Shown: positions 354 through 6,395 of the stretch, in pieces
How positions within the stretch are numbered: the first letter of the stretch is position 1
Layout: each line of letters starts with the position of its first letter
Sequence record: NC_009760.1
DNA length: 64,000 nucleotides
Reading direction: 5' to 3' (one strand)
Notes under the pieces: model-generated
What the model saw: only the letters and a program-made list of their open reading frames with translations
Databases searched by the model: none
What the model was told of the DNA's origin: nothing
Made by a program: the position numbers and the translations under genes

Positions 354-1100
354 CTACGCTCCACATCTTAACCATGCATCTCTTATTTCATAACCGGTTG
401 GCTGACGTTCATTGTTGCTAACGAACAACTCACGAAATTCGACCAACCACGATGCATCTACTGTTCCGCTGTATCTTGTCACTAGAGTATTTTCCTTACG
501 CTCCGCAGGACTCACATTCTCCTGCTTCGGTTTATTATGCGTCTGTACTCGCTTACGCTCCTCTTGTTTTACTCGTACGGATGCTGGCATCTTACGTACT
601 CGGACTAACGCTTTTACTATGCGTGCAATGTCACCATGCACTCCATTACTGAATGGCTTAAATGAATCAATCGCTGACTGTATCATCATTGGTTTCATAG
701 GTTTCCCATCCACCTTTATATATGGTCGTGCATCAGATGGATTCCATCCAATCTTAACTGTTACTCCCTTTTGTTTGAAGACAACGCCCAGCTCGTTGCT
801 ACGCACATACTCAAATACTTTCGTGTACGCTGGTGCTGTCTTTTCTTCCGGCTCGCTGTCGCTCGCCGAATCATATCCTAGTTCCTCTGCTACATAGAAG
901 TCATTCAGACACTCTATGCAAATGTGTCCATCATCCTCTGTGTAACATAGGTGACGAGACTCCTCATTGCAGAGTTCACATTGCTCGCTGACGCTCGCAA
1001 GTTTTACAGTCATCACTTTATAACTACGACCAAGTTTCTTTGTTTTCCAATCCATCCATAATACATATCTCTCTTCATTCACTACTGTTAAATTCATCAT
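354..1100 (-). CDS. Hypothetical early protein (248 aa) with Cys/His cluster, possible Zn finger
   Basis: GGAGG RBS 8 nt before ATG at 1100 (the track start at 1115 overlaps the RBS). Motif CELC-x6-LC-x6-HICIEC. Confidence 0.8.
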   Translation of the reverse strand: MMNLTVVNEERYVLWMDWKTKKLGRSYKVMTVKLASVSEQCELCNEESRHLCYTEDDGHICIECLNDFYVAEELGYDSASDSEPEEKTAPAYTKVFEYVRSNELGVVFKQKGVTVKIGWNPSDARPYIKVDGKPMKPMMIQSAIDSFKPFSNGVHGDIARIVKALVRVRKMPASVRVKQEERKRVQTHNKPKQENVSPAERKENTLVTRYSGTVDASWLVEFRELFVSNNERQPTGYEIRDAWLRCGA

Positions 1101-1139
1101 TTTAAATTCCTCCAATTTATATGTTTTTTGTTTAAAGCC

Positions 1140-1830
1140 GGGGACTCATTAGTGGTAGCCTGTTCAGGGCATCTCAGACTTCACCAATCGTGTCCATGAA
1201 GTTGCTAGGTCAACTGACACTGACTGAACAACTCCGTAGAGATTGTTTTCACATGTGCGTGCGTTATGTCTTCTAGTCATGACGTACTCTCCCTCGACCA
1301 AGAGTTAGAGTCGGCGTCCTAGCTTCTTGCACTTCCCTCGAAAGGGTGGCTATCCACTAGGGGCGTCCTCCATTCTTGTTAGTACGGAGAGCAGCAATGA
1401 CATACATGATGTCACGCAATGAGGACTCGTGTTGTCTTAACCCGAAGCAATCTGTGTCCTCACTGCTTCGGGATGTTAGCTGGTTGCTAAGTTTCCTAGT
1501 ACCATGTTTGTCCGCTACCCTATCGCGCTATCACTGATTACGGAGTGACCATCCGGGATACTGAATAAATGCTACATATATCTCACGACATACTGCATTG
1601 CCTGATTCCTCAACAGATCTCTTGTTTATACCGACGTTGATTCAGACGTCGAGGCATACTTGTGAAACGGTGGATGCTTACCGTGCCTGATAGGTCGCTA
1701 CTCGTCTACTGTTATGAGTAACAACGATGTTAGGTCTGATGATTCTACGAGGGCAACCAACCCTCCTCTCTGGTGTAGTTATAGTTGACACCATAAGAGA
1801 CACGATATGCTCATGTCTCCTAGCTACCAA
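1140..1830 (-). ncRNA. Candidate large structured non-coding RNA or long structured leader (~700 nt)
   Basis: No ORF of 60 aa or more on either strand. About 13 hairpins found by eye. Most extend by G-U pairs on the minus strand, and two carry UNCG loops (cUACGg at 1235-1238, UUCG at 1339-1342). No family assigned. Confidence 0.55.
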
Positions 1831-1835
1831 CTATA

Positions 1836-3488
1836 TTACTGACGACCTAACAACATAGCTTCTAACTGTGTATTTAACGCTTCTTCATCTCCTGTCTCAT
1901 GGAATAGTGCCATCGCATCACACAATGGTGTTGATACTAACTTCTCTGCTGTCATTCTTAATACGCCGTTGTCATCGAAGTCTACATCAGCTACTTGTTC
2001 ATGATTGTTGTACGGCCATAACACTAAGTCTTTTGATACGAAGCCACTGTTCATCATGTTCTCTTTTGTATATACGGTGTATCCTCTCTTACGTAATGTA
2101 TCAGCAACGATTTCCACACTGCCTTTATACTCAACACGACCTGTATATAACTCTTCAATGAATAAGGAATGATCTTCACCAATGCGGATTAAGAATCTAC
2201 CACCCCATCTGTTTTCACCTTCATCGAAATAGCCAACGATTGTCGCACCGGATACATTACCCAACACACCGATGTTGTTGTCATTCACCTTACCTAGTTC
2301 CCACTTCATACATGACGTCCACTCCTTATCTGTTGATACACGTAGTAGATCATCCTTCATACCACTGAACTTCACATGACCTGTCTTCTTCGTATTACGT
2401 GTTTCTACAATGTGTTTTACTTTGCCTAATGGAATACGAATGTCATCACCCAATATTTCCATCACTTGCGGAAACTCTTTTTCAATTCTGTTGATATACT
2501 TCACGACGCTGATCTTTCTGCCATCATCTAGTTGTACCTTGTTCTCCATGAAATCATCCTCATCTAATCGTTGTAATCGTAATAGTCTCATTTGGAATAT
2601 TACTGTGTGTTTGTGTAATGGATTCTCATAATCGACACGCAATGCACTTGATACATCTCGCAATGCTGAATGGAACATCTCATGTGAGTGATTGATTAAC
2701 TCAATGTCGAATGAATCTACAAGCAATGGATGTGCTGCTACTTGTTTGTGATTCGCTATCTTCATCATGTGATTGATTAATACTCTTGGATTGTTATCTA
2801 ATCGTGCTAAGTAATACATATCAACCATCATCACATTACCGATGTCGTACTTACCTGTGAATGTCATCTCTCTATCTACGTATGCATACTTCTTAGTTAC
2901 ATAGTTTTGTAGAACACCTTGTTCATATAGATACTCACAATAGTCTCTGCTTAACTTGTATTCATGTCCGAGTTTGAATCCATACTTCTTCGCACATAAT
3001 GATGCTCTGATATAACCTGTTGGTTCGAACTTGAGTGGACGAATGATACGTTGTTTGAATCCAATCTCTGCTGGTTCTGTGATAACAACCTTGCCGTCGT
3101 AGTAACATGCAGTGATGTTAATGTCGAAGTCCTCTTGTACATACTGACGAATATCATCTGTGTTCACCATCATGATCTCTACACGATACTTACCTATCGT
3201 ACCTTTTAATACTGATACAATTTTACTGATCTCAATGACACGTACTGATTCATCATCATCTTCTACTGTGATACTTGGACGTTCTCTGATTACCTCGCTG
3301 AACATAAAGCCCTTGCTTAATACGTGATATAATACCTCTGACTTACATGCGTCGGATGTAGATACGAACACATCAATGTCATTAGGTTCTTTACCCATCA
3401 ATGCATCTAATACACATCCACCTGCGATAATACCTTTGAAACCTTTTACCACTTTGTATACTTCTTTAATACCTGTACTTGCTGTCAT
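1836..3488 (-). CDS. Nucleotidyltransferase (poly(A) polymerase/CCA-adding class II-like head domain) fused to unknown C-terminal domain, 550 aa
   Basis: IAGGCVLDALMGKEPNDIDV gives GG plus D37-x-D39. QEDFDIN corresponds to RRDFTIN, and EPTGYIRA corresponds to EDPLRILRA. RBS AAAGGAG. Confidence 0.8.
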   Translation of the reverse strand: MTASTGIKEVYKVVKGFKGIIAGGCVLDALMGKEPNDIDVFVSTSDACKSEVLYHVLSKGFMFSEVIRERPSITVEDDDESVRVIEISKIVSVLKGTIGKYRVEIMMVNTDDIRQYVQEDFDINITACYYDGKVVITEPAEIGFKQRIIRPLKFEPTGYIRASLCAKKYGFKLGHEYKLSRDYCEYLYEQGVLQNYVTKKYAYVDREMTFTGKYDIGNVMMVDMYYLARLDNNPRVLINHMMKIANHKQVAAHPLLVDSFDIELINHSHEMFHSALRDVSSALRVDYENPLHKHTVIFQMRLLRLQRLDEDDFMENKVQLDDGRKISVVKYINRIEKEFPQVMEILGDDIRIPLGKVKHIVETRNTKKTGHVKFSGMKDDLLRVSTDKEWTSCMKWELGKVNDNNIGVLGNVSGATIVGYFDEGENRWGGRFLIRIGEDHSLFIEELYTGRVEYKGSVEIVADTLRKRGYTVYTKENMMNSGFVSKDLVLWPYNNHEQVADVDFDDNGVLRMTAEKLVSTPLCDAMALFHETGDEEALNTQLEAMLLGRQ

Positions 3489-3510: not shown

Positions 3511-3539
3511 AAATAAGGAGCCGAGATATACCCGACTCC
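3511..3539 (-). terminator. Intrinsic terminator
   Basis: Minus strand GGAGUCGGG-UAUAU-CUCGGCUCC (9 bp with two G-U pairs) followed by UUAUUU, just after the stop at 3551. Confidence 0.7.
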
Positions 3540-4225: not shown

Positions 4226-4569
4226 TAGATTGTATCCTCCTGTGTAGATGCTGTTTCAGCCATCATCATTATTTGTTCAAACATAATCTCGAATCTTACT
4301 TCACTTCCTCCATTACCTTGTGCATTCAGTCGAATACCATGATGTGCATACATTTGTTTAATAATCTTTGCTTCATTTGTGCTTTTTAATCTTACGTTTG
4401 TTTTGATTCTTGTTACAGTCAATCTGTCGATACCAAGAGATAACATGTACGATACGCAATCTTTTAAATAAGCCTTAGCTTCTTGTTGTTGGTCTAGGAT
4501 TAGCTTTTGTGCTACGTTGTGTGATAATACCCCTTCAATCATTGAGATTGTTTCATTTGACAACTTCAT
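4225..4569 (-). CDS. Hypothetical protein, 114 aa
   Basis: TAATG stop/start coupling at both ends. AAGGA upstream. Confidence 0.8.
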   Translation of the reverse strand: MKLSNETISMIEGVLSHNVAQKLILDQQQEAKAYLKDCVSYMLSLGIDRLTVTRIKTNVRLKSTNEAKIIKQMYAHHGIRLNAQGNGGSEVRFEIMFEQIMMMAETASTQEDTI

Positions 4570-5774: not shown

Positions 5775-6395
5775 CTATGCAAATAAGTTTTTAATCTTAC
5801 CTAATAGACTACTGAATACACCCTGCTTACCTTCTCCTGGTGGTAATTCATTGTTGTCCTTTAGTCTCTTGATGTAGATGATACGTTTCTCTAACTCAGG
5901 TACTAGATGATGGATACCTAGTCTGATACCCTCTGCTCTCATGATGTTAAGCATTAGTAATACACTCTCCTTTCCACACTGTTGTACTGCATACTCATCA
6001 CACTTAAACTCTTGCTCTGTCACCTCGTGCTGTTCTGTTAGATGTCCAGTAGGATACATGATATGACCTAGTTCATGAGATACTAGTGCTTGTCTTACAT
6101 ACTGGTTACTGTTGAATGATTTATAGTCATATACAATAATCATGTAATCTAAGTAGTATCCTGTTAGTTCAGCGATTTGTTCATTGTCATACACTGTCAT
6201 CATTACAGTTAAGATACGAGTGTCGATGTGGTGCTTCTCGATGTCCTCAATGGATAGTTGATGATGACTTGCTAAGTCTTGTGGTTGTTCGATGATAGCA
6301 ACATGTTCTGTCTTGCCGTTGATGTTTACAGTGAATACTTCTTTCACCGATTGTCTTACTTCCATTACTTCTGCTTGCGTTAGTTTGTCTGTCAT
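5775..6395 (-). CDS. Zinc metallopeptidase-like protein (HExxH; M48 or ImmA/IrrE-like), 206 aa
   Basis: ALVSHELGH followed by EFKCDEYA (E-x-x-x-D third-ligand motif). GGAGG RBS. Confidence 0.7.
   Translation of the reverse strand: MTDKLTQAEVMEVRQSVKEVFTVNINGKTEHVAIIEQPQDLASHHQLSIEDIEKHHIDTRILTVMMTVYDNEQIAELTGYYLDYMIIVYDYKSFNSNQYVRQALVSHELGHIMYPTGHLTEQHEVTEQEFKCDEYAVQQCGKESVLLMLNIMRAEGIRLGIHHLVPELEKRIIYIKRLKDNNELPPGEGKQGVFSSLLGKIKNLFA

Follow-up and report, generated by a model that had tools for sequence, protein, structure and literature searches.

OLE RNA, a transcript of ~600–700 nucleotides (nt) found in Firmicutes, lies upstream of the gene of its binding protein (oapA) and is co-transcribed with it. 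The retron msr-msd RNA is encoded upstream of a reverse transcriptase, and the omega RNA (HEARO) lies beside IscB; in these systems the RNA and its effector are co-oriented and move together. The phi29 pRNA is a structured RNA of ~120–170 nt that is encoded near the end of a Bacillus phage genome and forms part of a phage machine. The GOLLD and ROOL RNAs, which are ~580–800 nt long and pseudoknotted, are frequent in phages and prophages of Firmicutes (PMC12286853, PMC5737381); they form RNA-only cages, as reported in a source that also describes the structure of OLE RNA (PMC12286853). Here we describe an intergenic element of Bacillus thuringiensis phage 0305phi8-36, located at positions 1101–1835 (minus strand) of the analysed window, which comprises bases 1–64000 at the left end of the 218,948 base pair (bp) genome. 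The element very probably encodes a conserved, highly structured RNA of ~650–700 nt that belongs to a family outside Rfam 15. Two features define its setting:

1101–1835, minus strand: intergenic element, candidate RNA of ~700 nt, delimited by the annotation and by homologous gaps upstream of gp101 homologues
354–1100, minus strand: ORF101 (gp101), the gene always downstream of the RNA

The element occupies the 735-nt gap between open reading frames ORF101 and ORF102, both on the minus strand, within the 6479-bp left terminal repeat, a location that gives two copies per genome. An original prediction, made from the letters of the sequence alone, had singled it out as the longest non-coding stretch, and within the 64-kb window this is the case: no longer ORF-free stretch than 1101–1835 is present, and the larger apparent gaps at 60–64 kb reflect ORF147 extending past the window end and are not non-coding. 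No ORF of at least 60 amino acids occurs in the gap. The authors of the genome paper take the non-coding DNA of 0305phi8-36 to be functional (PMC2147016); the open literature on this phage calls its non-coding segments probably functional and leaves the element at 1101–1835 undescribed.

A search of the whole window against Rfam 15, whose families include GOLLD, ROOL, OLE, HEARO, group I and II introns, pRNA, RNase P, transfer-messenger RNA (tmRNA) and 6S, gave no matches at gathering thresholds. Searching positions 900–2100 with permissive filters and expectation values (E) up to 10 gave no credible match in the gap, and the gaps of six homologous loci likewise matched no Rfam family, in agreement with the earlier view that the RNA could be assigned to none. 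The only match inside the gap in the permissive scan, mir-30 on the hairpin at 1441–1472 (E = 5.3), is noise, as are the U8 and RsmY matches of that scan.

Comparison with the described systems yields partial likenesses. Like OLE, the element is a large ornate RNA directly upstream of a protein gene; unlike OLE, it matches no Rfam family, gp101 looks soluble in contrast to the membrane-protein partner of OLE, the setting is a lytic jumbo phage rather than a bacterial chromosome, and binding by gp101 is proposed only. With GOLLD and ROOL it shares the character of a very large, intricately folded, pseudoknotted phage RNA, although membership in either family failed (no match at E up to 10); they serve as analogies only. 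The transfer RNA (tRNA) gene context typical of GOLLD and ROOL is not found here, where the neighbours are gp103/gp102 and gp101, and the 64-kb window contains no tRNA or tmRNA according to ARAGORN; conversely, the strict linkage to one gene seen here is not a feature of GOLLD or ROOL. As in the guide and scaffold RNA systems, a structured RNA and a protein gene form one compact co-oriented module, but gp101 has no recognisable reverse-transcriptase or nuclease domain, the RNA is 2–4 times larger, and there is no Rfam match. The phi29 pRNA, too, is structured and comes from close to one end of a Bacillus phage genome; however, the pRNA model does not match, and 0305phi8-36 packages its DNA via a conventional large terminase. 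The element thus represents a new family among the large ornate RNAs of phages and bacteria, a loose class, and its distinguishing feature, judged from the sequences, is strict linkage to one protein gene in a jumbo phage lineage.

Folding of the 735-nt gap was compared with 100 dinucleotide shuffles per strand. The minus strand has a minimum free energy (MFE) of -235.8 kcal/mol (z = -4.48), and 0 of 100 shuffles were equally stable, versus z = -2.15 for the plus strand under the same control. Among 735-nt minus-strand tiles of the window, none folds as stably as the gap, and the z-score of the sense strand was more negative than that of the antisense strand in 9 of 9 homologues tested. Covariation-supported pairs contain 47 G-U or U-G alignment cells versus 13 A-C or C-A cells. 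The G-U excess, together with the stability of the sense strand, assigns the RNA to the strand of the flanking genes and disfavours a DNA-level element. These results bear out much of the original prediction, which had reported G-U pairs gained on the minus strand and had named folding beyond dinucleotide shuffles as a check. The stems it listed at 1797–1819, 1749–1765, 1667–1684, 1632–1651, 1441–1472, 1397–1415 and 1318–1322/1357–1361 were recovered at those positions, and its two UNCG loops are present as C(UACG)G at about 1236–1241 and U(UUCG)A at about 1337–1344; of the two, the UUCG loop alone is seen again in relatives, where the L008 clade has cUUCGg.

All informative relatives were reached through gp101 homologues in assemblies of public sequencing data (Logan, ENA and JGI). 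DNA searches of phage GenBank, and IMG/VR searches with proteins and with a 25-base gapped motif, recovered 0305phi8-36 alone, and neither plasmid DNA nor GTDB genomes gave matches. In the public assemblies, gp101 homologues were found at 45–99% identity, and a gap of ~700–780 nt precedes the homologue wherever the contig extends far enough upstream; contig L020 carries only the last 325 nt of the gap. More distant gp101-like genes (25–35% identity) lie on ~210-kb contigs, one of them from a high-GC phage, and are preceded by 630–840 nt without a credible gene. Gaps of 630–840 nt were recorded in L007, L024, L019, L008–L011, L015–L018, L013, L014, L025, L026, L030 and L031, and the homologous gap is found in at least eight lineages. 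All members of the gp101 family with full upstream DNA carry the gap, a single contig (L021) excepted. The linkage of RNA and gp101 is kept down to 25–35% protein identity and across 42–55% GC while other neighbours change; the two co-occur across divergent genomes, as is expected of the proposed RNA-protein module.

Nucleotide comparisons at the locus indicate selective constraint on the gap. The L007 gap differs at 1 of 735 nt in a locus that is ~95% identical overall (~5% divergence), and the L024 gap likewise differs at 1 nt in 735. Between L019 and 0305phi8-36, 24 of 735 gap positions differ (3.3%), versus 69 of 738 aligned positions in gp101 (9.3%), 44 of these at third codon positions (~18% there). 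Most of the L019 gap changes (15/24) fall at positions unpaired in the MFE fold, and one stem carries a double change, C:G to U:A, at 1683/1668. The gap evolves more slowly than the adjoining genes and is under stronger constraint. Across clades, the blocks AGGGUAGC, UCUCCG, GGGRGA, UCUG (within GUCUGA) and CACUAAU recur at fixed spacing.

With a high degree of confidence, the RNA can be divided into a variable 5' hairpin domain, a 193-nt pseudoknotted core, and a 3' domain with conserved blocks. The core contains the following elements:

1283–1475, minus strand: core domain of 193 nt, modelled as covariance model R1 and scored on MAFFT alignment A6
1441–1472, minus strand: pseudoknot hairpin (CCCGAAGC.../...GCUUCGGG), with every cell paired and compensatory change in 4 of 8 pairs
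1456–1462, minus strand: pseudoknot 5' strand UGAGGAC, within the hairpin loop, supported by covariation
1420–1426, minus strand: pseudoknot 3' strand GUCCUCA, supported by covariation
1398–1414, minus strand: hairpin H (UGACAU/AUGUCA), in 6 of 9 aligned sequences, its register uncertain in the rest
1384–1392, minus strand: 5' strand of long-range helix J1 (GCUCUCCGU), followed by a near-invariant ACUAAC, from the alignments
1286–1294, minus strand: 3' strand of long-range helix J1 (AGGGAGAGU), from the alignments
1299–1378, minus strand: domain enclosed by J1, with 16 of 21 pairs in helices 5–8 changed on both sides

The core was tested on a plain MAFFT alignment of eight sequences, using the RNAalifold structure and a pseudoknot found by hand. 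In this alignment 91.3% of cells are paired, versus 34–51% with slid partners; 25 of 44 pairs have changed on both sides, versus 3–7 with slid partners; and 0 of 500 shuffles reach the observed values. Alignment of the core with the covariance model agrees with the MAFFT result, and the core shows the compensatory changes of a conserved structured RNA. The pseudoknot itself covaries at pairs 15:59 (GC or AU), 16:58 (AU or GC) and 18:56 (GC or AU). Downstream, J1 (CUCUCC/GGGAGAG) is a long-range helix that closes a multi-helix domain, enclosing helices at 1368–1378/1299–1310, 1363–1364/1314–1315 and 1356–1361/1318–1323 and a UUCG-capped stem at 1335–1345. R1 matches the 64-kb window only at the core and at the core's own antisense hairpin. 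When RNAalifold was run on the full-length MAFFT alignment, in which the 5' third is misaligned, it gave a long-range helix competing with the pseudoknot; this helix was rejected because the pseudoknot covaries better.

A distant contig, L031, was held out when the structure was derived, and its alignment is fitted to the model. R1 matches L031 over its full length within the L031 gap (E = 0.0025), with 32 of 34 pairs canonical and 13 changed on both sides relative to 0305phi8-36. The pseudoknot is kept there with a different sequence, GUGAGAG/CUCUCAC, and J1 reads CCCUCC/GGAGGG. Adding L031 to the MAFFT alignment misaligns the inner domain, and no second model was built. Covariation in homologues was another check named at the outset, and it has been answered by the compensatory changes in 25 of 44 core pairs together with the covarying pseudoknot; the broader proposal, a large structured RNA read from the strand of the flanking genes, is upheld by conservation, constraint, covariation and the minus-strand G-U bias.

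The domains on either side of the core, and the segment leading to gp101, are composed as follows:

1476–1835, minus strand: 5' domain, more variable, with clade-specific insertions and deletions, from per-sequence folds
1760–1769, minus strand: conserved purine motif GAGAGGAGGG (GAAAGGAGGG/U in relatives), from the alignments
1632–1651, minus strand: hairpin P5c (CGACGU/ACGUCG), with covariation of GC to UG and UA to AU
1577–1592, minus strand: hairpin P5d (UAUGUC/GAUAUA), with covariation in L013 and L014
1541–1555, minus strand: hairpin P5e (CGGA/UCCG; UGAG/CUCA in L014), supported by covariation
1514–1521, minus strand: invariant block AGGGUAGC, always 123–130 nt before UCUCCG
1142–1282, minus strand: 3' domain, from per-sequence folds
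1174–1179, minus strand: block GUCUGA, of which UCUG is invariant in 8 of 8 Bacillus-type sequences
1148–1154, minus strand: invariant block CACUAAU, exactly 20 nt after GUCUG in 8 of 8 Bacillus-type sequences
1114–1141, minus strand: A-rich linker, predicted to be unstructured from folds and the alignment
1109–1113, minus strand: gp101 ribosome-binding site GGAGG, read from the sequence and conserved in the alignment

The 5' domain contains hairpins at 1797–1819 and 1771–1793 and hairpins P5a to P5e. For five local hairpins of this domain, 87.4% of cells are paired versus 33–47% with slid partners, and 10 of 26 pairs have changed on both sides; per-sequence folds of anchored segments give the same hairpins with different sequences. 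Block AGGGUAGC is also present in L031, and L030 carries the variant AGGGUAGU. The 5' end of the candidate RNA is uncertain, with 1835 and about 1776 as its limits. In relatives, the first 30–70 nt of the gap after gp103 are taken up by a strong hairpin that lacks a U-tract, which adds to this uncertainty.

The purine motif at 1760–1769 resembles a Shine-Dalgarno sequence and is followed by no usable start codon. In L025 (about 1925–1940) and L031 (about 4385–4400) it reads GAAAGGAGGUGAU, a 13-nt complement of the 3' end of Bacillus 16S ribosomal RNA (rRNA); an AUG follows after only 2 nt in these contigs, too close to serve as a start. The motif may be a ribosome-binding decoy, or a partner of pyrimidine-rich strands.

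The 3' domain contains a long hairpin at 1198–1235 (GGAGUUG/CAACUUC). The bases flanking its UCUG vary, as in CUCUGA in L017 and GUCUGC in L015, L016 and L013. The 3' end of the candidate RNA is also uncertain, as the structured part stops near 1142 and is followed by the A-rich linker. This linker and the gp101 ribosome-binding site are both conserved in the alignment, and the gp101 start codon is at 1098–1100.

In the gp101 protein, an N-terminal zinc ribbon is joined through an acidic linker to a C-terminal domain that is conserved and includes a basic stretch. The N-terminal module of the protein is interchangeable, being either a zinc ribbon or a Rho_N/SAP-like domain (PF07498 on P0012) joined to the same C-terminal domain, and both module types bind nucleic acid in other proteins. 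The family is small, with 1.84 billion representatives yielding 38 clusters at 50% identity. Of two predicted structures, the first is poor, with a predicted local distance difference test score (pLDDT) of 57, and the second reaches 70.9, with a core of about 90. Weak sequence matches of gp101 to eS17 (E about 0.1) are noise. The gene calls of several gp101 homologues (P0014, P0017, P0033–P0035 and P0041) carry an extra 50–75 N-terminal residues that are absent from the gp101 family. In L030 (5001–5207, P0014), alignment places the true start ~69 codons downstream and the call swallows the end of the gap; this extension is probably part of the 3' domain of the RNA, mis-annotated as coding.

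The gene order gp105-gp104-gp103-RNA-gp101-...-polymerase is conserved, with a YonO-like single-subunit RNA polymerase gene (PF05183) located 1–3 small genes downstream of gp101 in all long-contig relatives. The putative polymerase of 0305phi8-36 is orf99 (PMC2147016). The coordinates of the polymerase genes, and of the gene upstream of the RNA in 0305phi8-36, are:

8557–12333 in L008, 7638–11249 in L013, 7323–11000 in L030 and 6995–10645 in L031: YonO-like polymerase gene
1836–3488, minus strand: ORF102 (gp102), Gad2-like nucleotidyltransferase, outside the conserved module

Only 0305phi8-36 and its closest relatives have gp102 inserted between gp103 and the RNA; elsewhere gp103 directly precedes the gap, and by this gene order ORF102 is a lineage-specific insertion. 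The gp102 protein matches a PolyA_pol head domain (E = 5e-4) and phrog_1614 (2e-14). Its one homologue, 91% identical and located on L007, carries a precomputed Pfam match to Gad2 (PF26128), which a local Pfam search of gp102 did not return. Gad2 is a phage anti-Gabija protein and a predicted nucleotidyltransferase (bioRxiv 10.1101/2023.05.01.538930), and gp102 is a candidate counter-defence gene. A role for the RNA as substrate or partner of the gp102 nucleotidyltransferase was considered and dropped, as gp102 is absent from more distant relatives. In comparison with L007, the 3' end of ORF102 (1872–2047, the last ~200 nt) is the most diverged part of the locus, with 72–89% identity and insertions and deletions, and it directly adjoins the 99.9%-identical RNA; it looks like a recombination junction or a fast-evolving C-terminus. 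The sole site in the terminal repeat that resembles an intrinsic terminator is at 3517–3539 (minus strand), between gp103 and gp102. Farther upstream, ORF107 (5775–6395, minus strand) has a weak match, at E = 3e-4 and short of the cut-off, to PF18894, a family of putative phage metallopeptidases.

No terminator-like site is present in 1101–1835, and promoter-like sites in the gap are fewer than in shuffles. Because there is no terminator or promoter match between the RNA and its neighbours, the RNA would be part of the leftward terminal-repeat transcript; and because no terminator intervenes and the linker to gp101 is conserved and open, the RNA and the gp101 message would at least initially be one molecule. 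We favour a reading, with a probability of roughly 0.45, in which the RNA forms an RNA-protein particle with gp101 that is assembled in cis. The leftward terminal-repeat transcript would carry the RNA and the gp101 message in one continuous piece, and the RNA would fold during transcription. Translation of gp101 would proceed via the open A-rich linker and a strong ribosome-binding site 40–50 nt downstream of the RNA, and gp101 would then bind the RNA to form a ribonucleoprotein, for which host takeover, counter-defence, or a role with the polymerase are candidate functions. A more ambitious version, of fairly low probability, makes the RNA and gp101 a new ribonucleoprotein, ancient and central to the lineage of 0305phi8-36-like jumbo phages and encoded beside their YonO-type polymerase; it would act either as a polymerase cofactor or regulator or as an RNA-based takeover or counter-defence device.

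Several observations weigh against a particle of RNA and gp101, or against parts of the structure and its conservation. First, adjacency to gp101 is equally expected of a cis-acting leader. Second, the predicted fold of gp101 has no match in PDB or BFVD by Foldseek, and profile searches with gp101 gave no RNA-binding family. Third, the covariation comes from 8–10 sequences in about 5–6 lineages, and the nested structure was derived from the same alignment used to score it; for the 3' domain, RNAalifold on the MAFFT alignment gave no consensus structure. Fourth, homology of the L025 and L030 gaps is based on motif order and position only, with a non-significant R1 match on the L025 gap (E = 1.6) and no full match in L030. 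Finally, L021, a 1.7-kb contig, carries a gp101-like gene with an upstream gap of only 95 nt.

The original prediction offered a choice between a stand-alone RNA and a very long regulatory leader; that pair of options has survived the analysis, and the strict linkage with gp101 and the status of ORF102 as a lineage-specific insertion are additions to it. The leader option is less probable than the particle with gp101 but a serious competitor. In this case the element would be the 5' untranslated region of gp101 with no function in trans, and would perhaps control gp101 translation or the stability or processing of its message, sensing a ligand, a protein (gp101 itself) or temperature. Such a leader would explain why the element is always immediately upstream of gp101 and co-oriented with it, why no terminator separates them, and why the linker and ribosome-binding site are conserved; in four clades, GGCUYUAAA could also pair weakly with the ribosome-binding site. 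However, a length of ~700 nt is several times that of known riboswitches, T-boxes and ribosomal-protein leaders. The best-supported and most conserved structure is 180–370 nt away from the ribosome-binding site, folding predicts an open linker, and no helix that would hide the ribosome-binding site is conserved across clades, such a helix being absent in the L008 clade. It is the size of the element and the lack of a conserved helix of this kind that disfavour a cis-acting leader.

An RNA that acts on its own, without gp101, is less probable still. It could form a GOLLD- or ROOL-like multimer, draw off a host factor or defence protein as a decoy, or act as a ribozyme, and its linkage to gp101 would be conserved gene order only. 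Its size, ornate fold and phage origin do resemble those of GOLLD and ROOL, a Gad2-like counter-defence candidate lies in the same region, and the purine motif of L025 and L031 is complementary to the 3' end of 16S rRNA. Against this, neither GOLLD, ROOL nor any ribozyme model matches in sequence or structure, there are no tRNA neighbours, and the gp101 linkage persists (25–35% identity, 42–55% GC) while other neighbours change.

Two further explanations have very little probability. The element could be a self-splicing intron or a degenerate group I or II remnant; its size would fit, and 0305phi8-36 has a group I intron elsewhere, in recA (PMC3239194). However, no intron model matches even at E up to 10, the element lies between genes and not within one, the upstream gene (gp102 or gp103, depending on the relative) has its own stop, and gp101 has its own conserved ribosome-binding site and ATG. 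Nor do unannotated small genes, or a decayed gene, account well for the gap. Stop-free frames of 45–58 codons exist, the longest in 0305phi8-36 having 58 codons, and antisense open frames of 100–140 codons overlap the RNA in L014 (5280–5696, minus strand) and L017, one of the two being called as a gene. But no conserved ORF is present in the gap and no frame is open in all clades, insertions and deletions in the alignment are not multiples of three, and translated similarity between clades occurs in every frame on both strands in pieces of 17–43 codons that switch from one frame to another, which is what conservation at the nucleotide level would produce; a single antisense match, between L014 and L017, spans 90 codons at 37% identity. 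The L014 and L017 antisense frames are probably a by-product of this nucleotide conservation, and coding would leave the base-pair covariation and the G-U bias unexplained.

A DNA-level element such as a replication origin, a packaging or terminal-repeat signal, or a promoter cluster would suit a location in the terminal repeat and the assumption of the genome authors that the non-coding DNA is functional (PMC2147016), but it is the least credible of the alternatives, as the gap contains no iterons or notable repeats (only short matches at chance level) and fewer promoter-like sites than shuffles, its strand-asymmetric stability, G-U over A-C preference and pseudoknot covariation are signatures of RNA, and in relatives it is internal to contigs beside gp101, whatever the genome ends.

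To our knowledge, fewer than about a dozen classes of non-coding RNA longer than 500 nt have been recognised in bacteria and phages, and every large class that we know to be understood has revealed unusual biochemistry, in the form of ribozymes, RNA cages or membrane ribonucleoproteins. The element of 0305phi8-36 adds a new class of large RNA, in a phage and host that can be cultivated, with a pseudoknot that can be tested and a defined candidate for a partner gene, gp101. It also illustrates that what looks like a conserved 'non-coding' gap of a jumbo phage may turn out to be an RNA gene, and that gene callers sometimes translate part of such an RNA as a false N-terminal extension, here of gp101 homologues. 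If the RNA and gp101 do form a ribonucleoprotein, they would represent a new functional class of large non-coding RNA.

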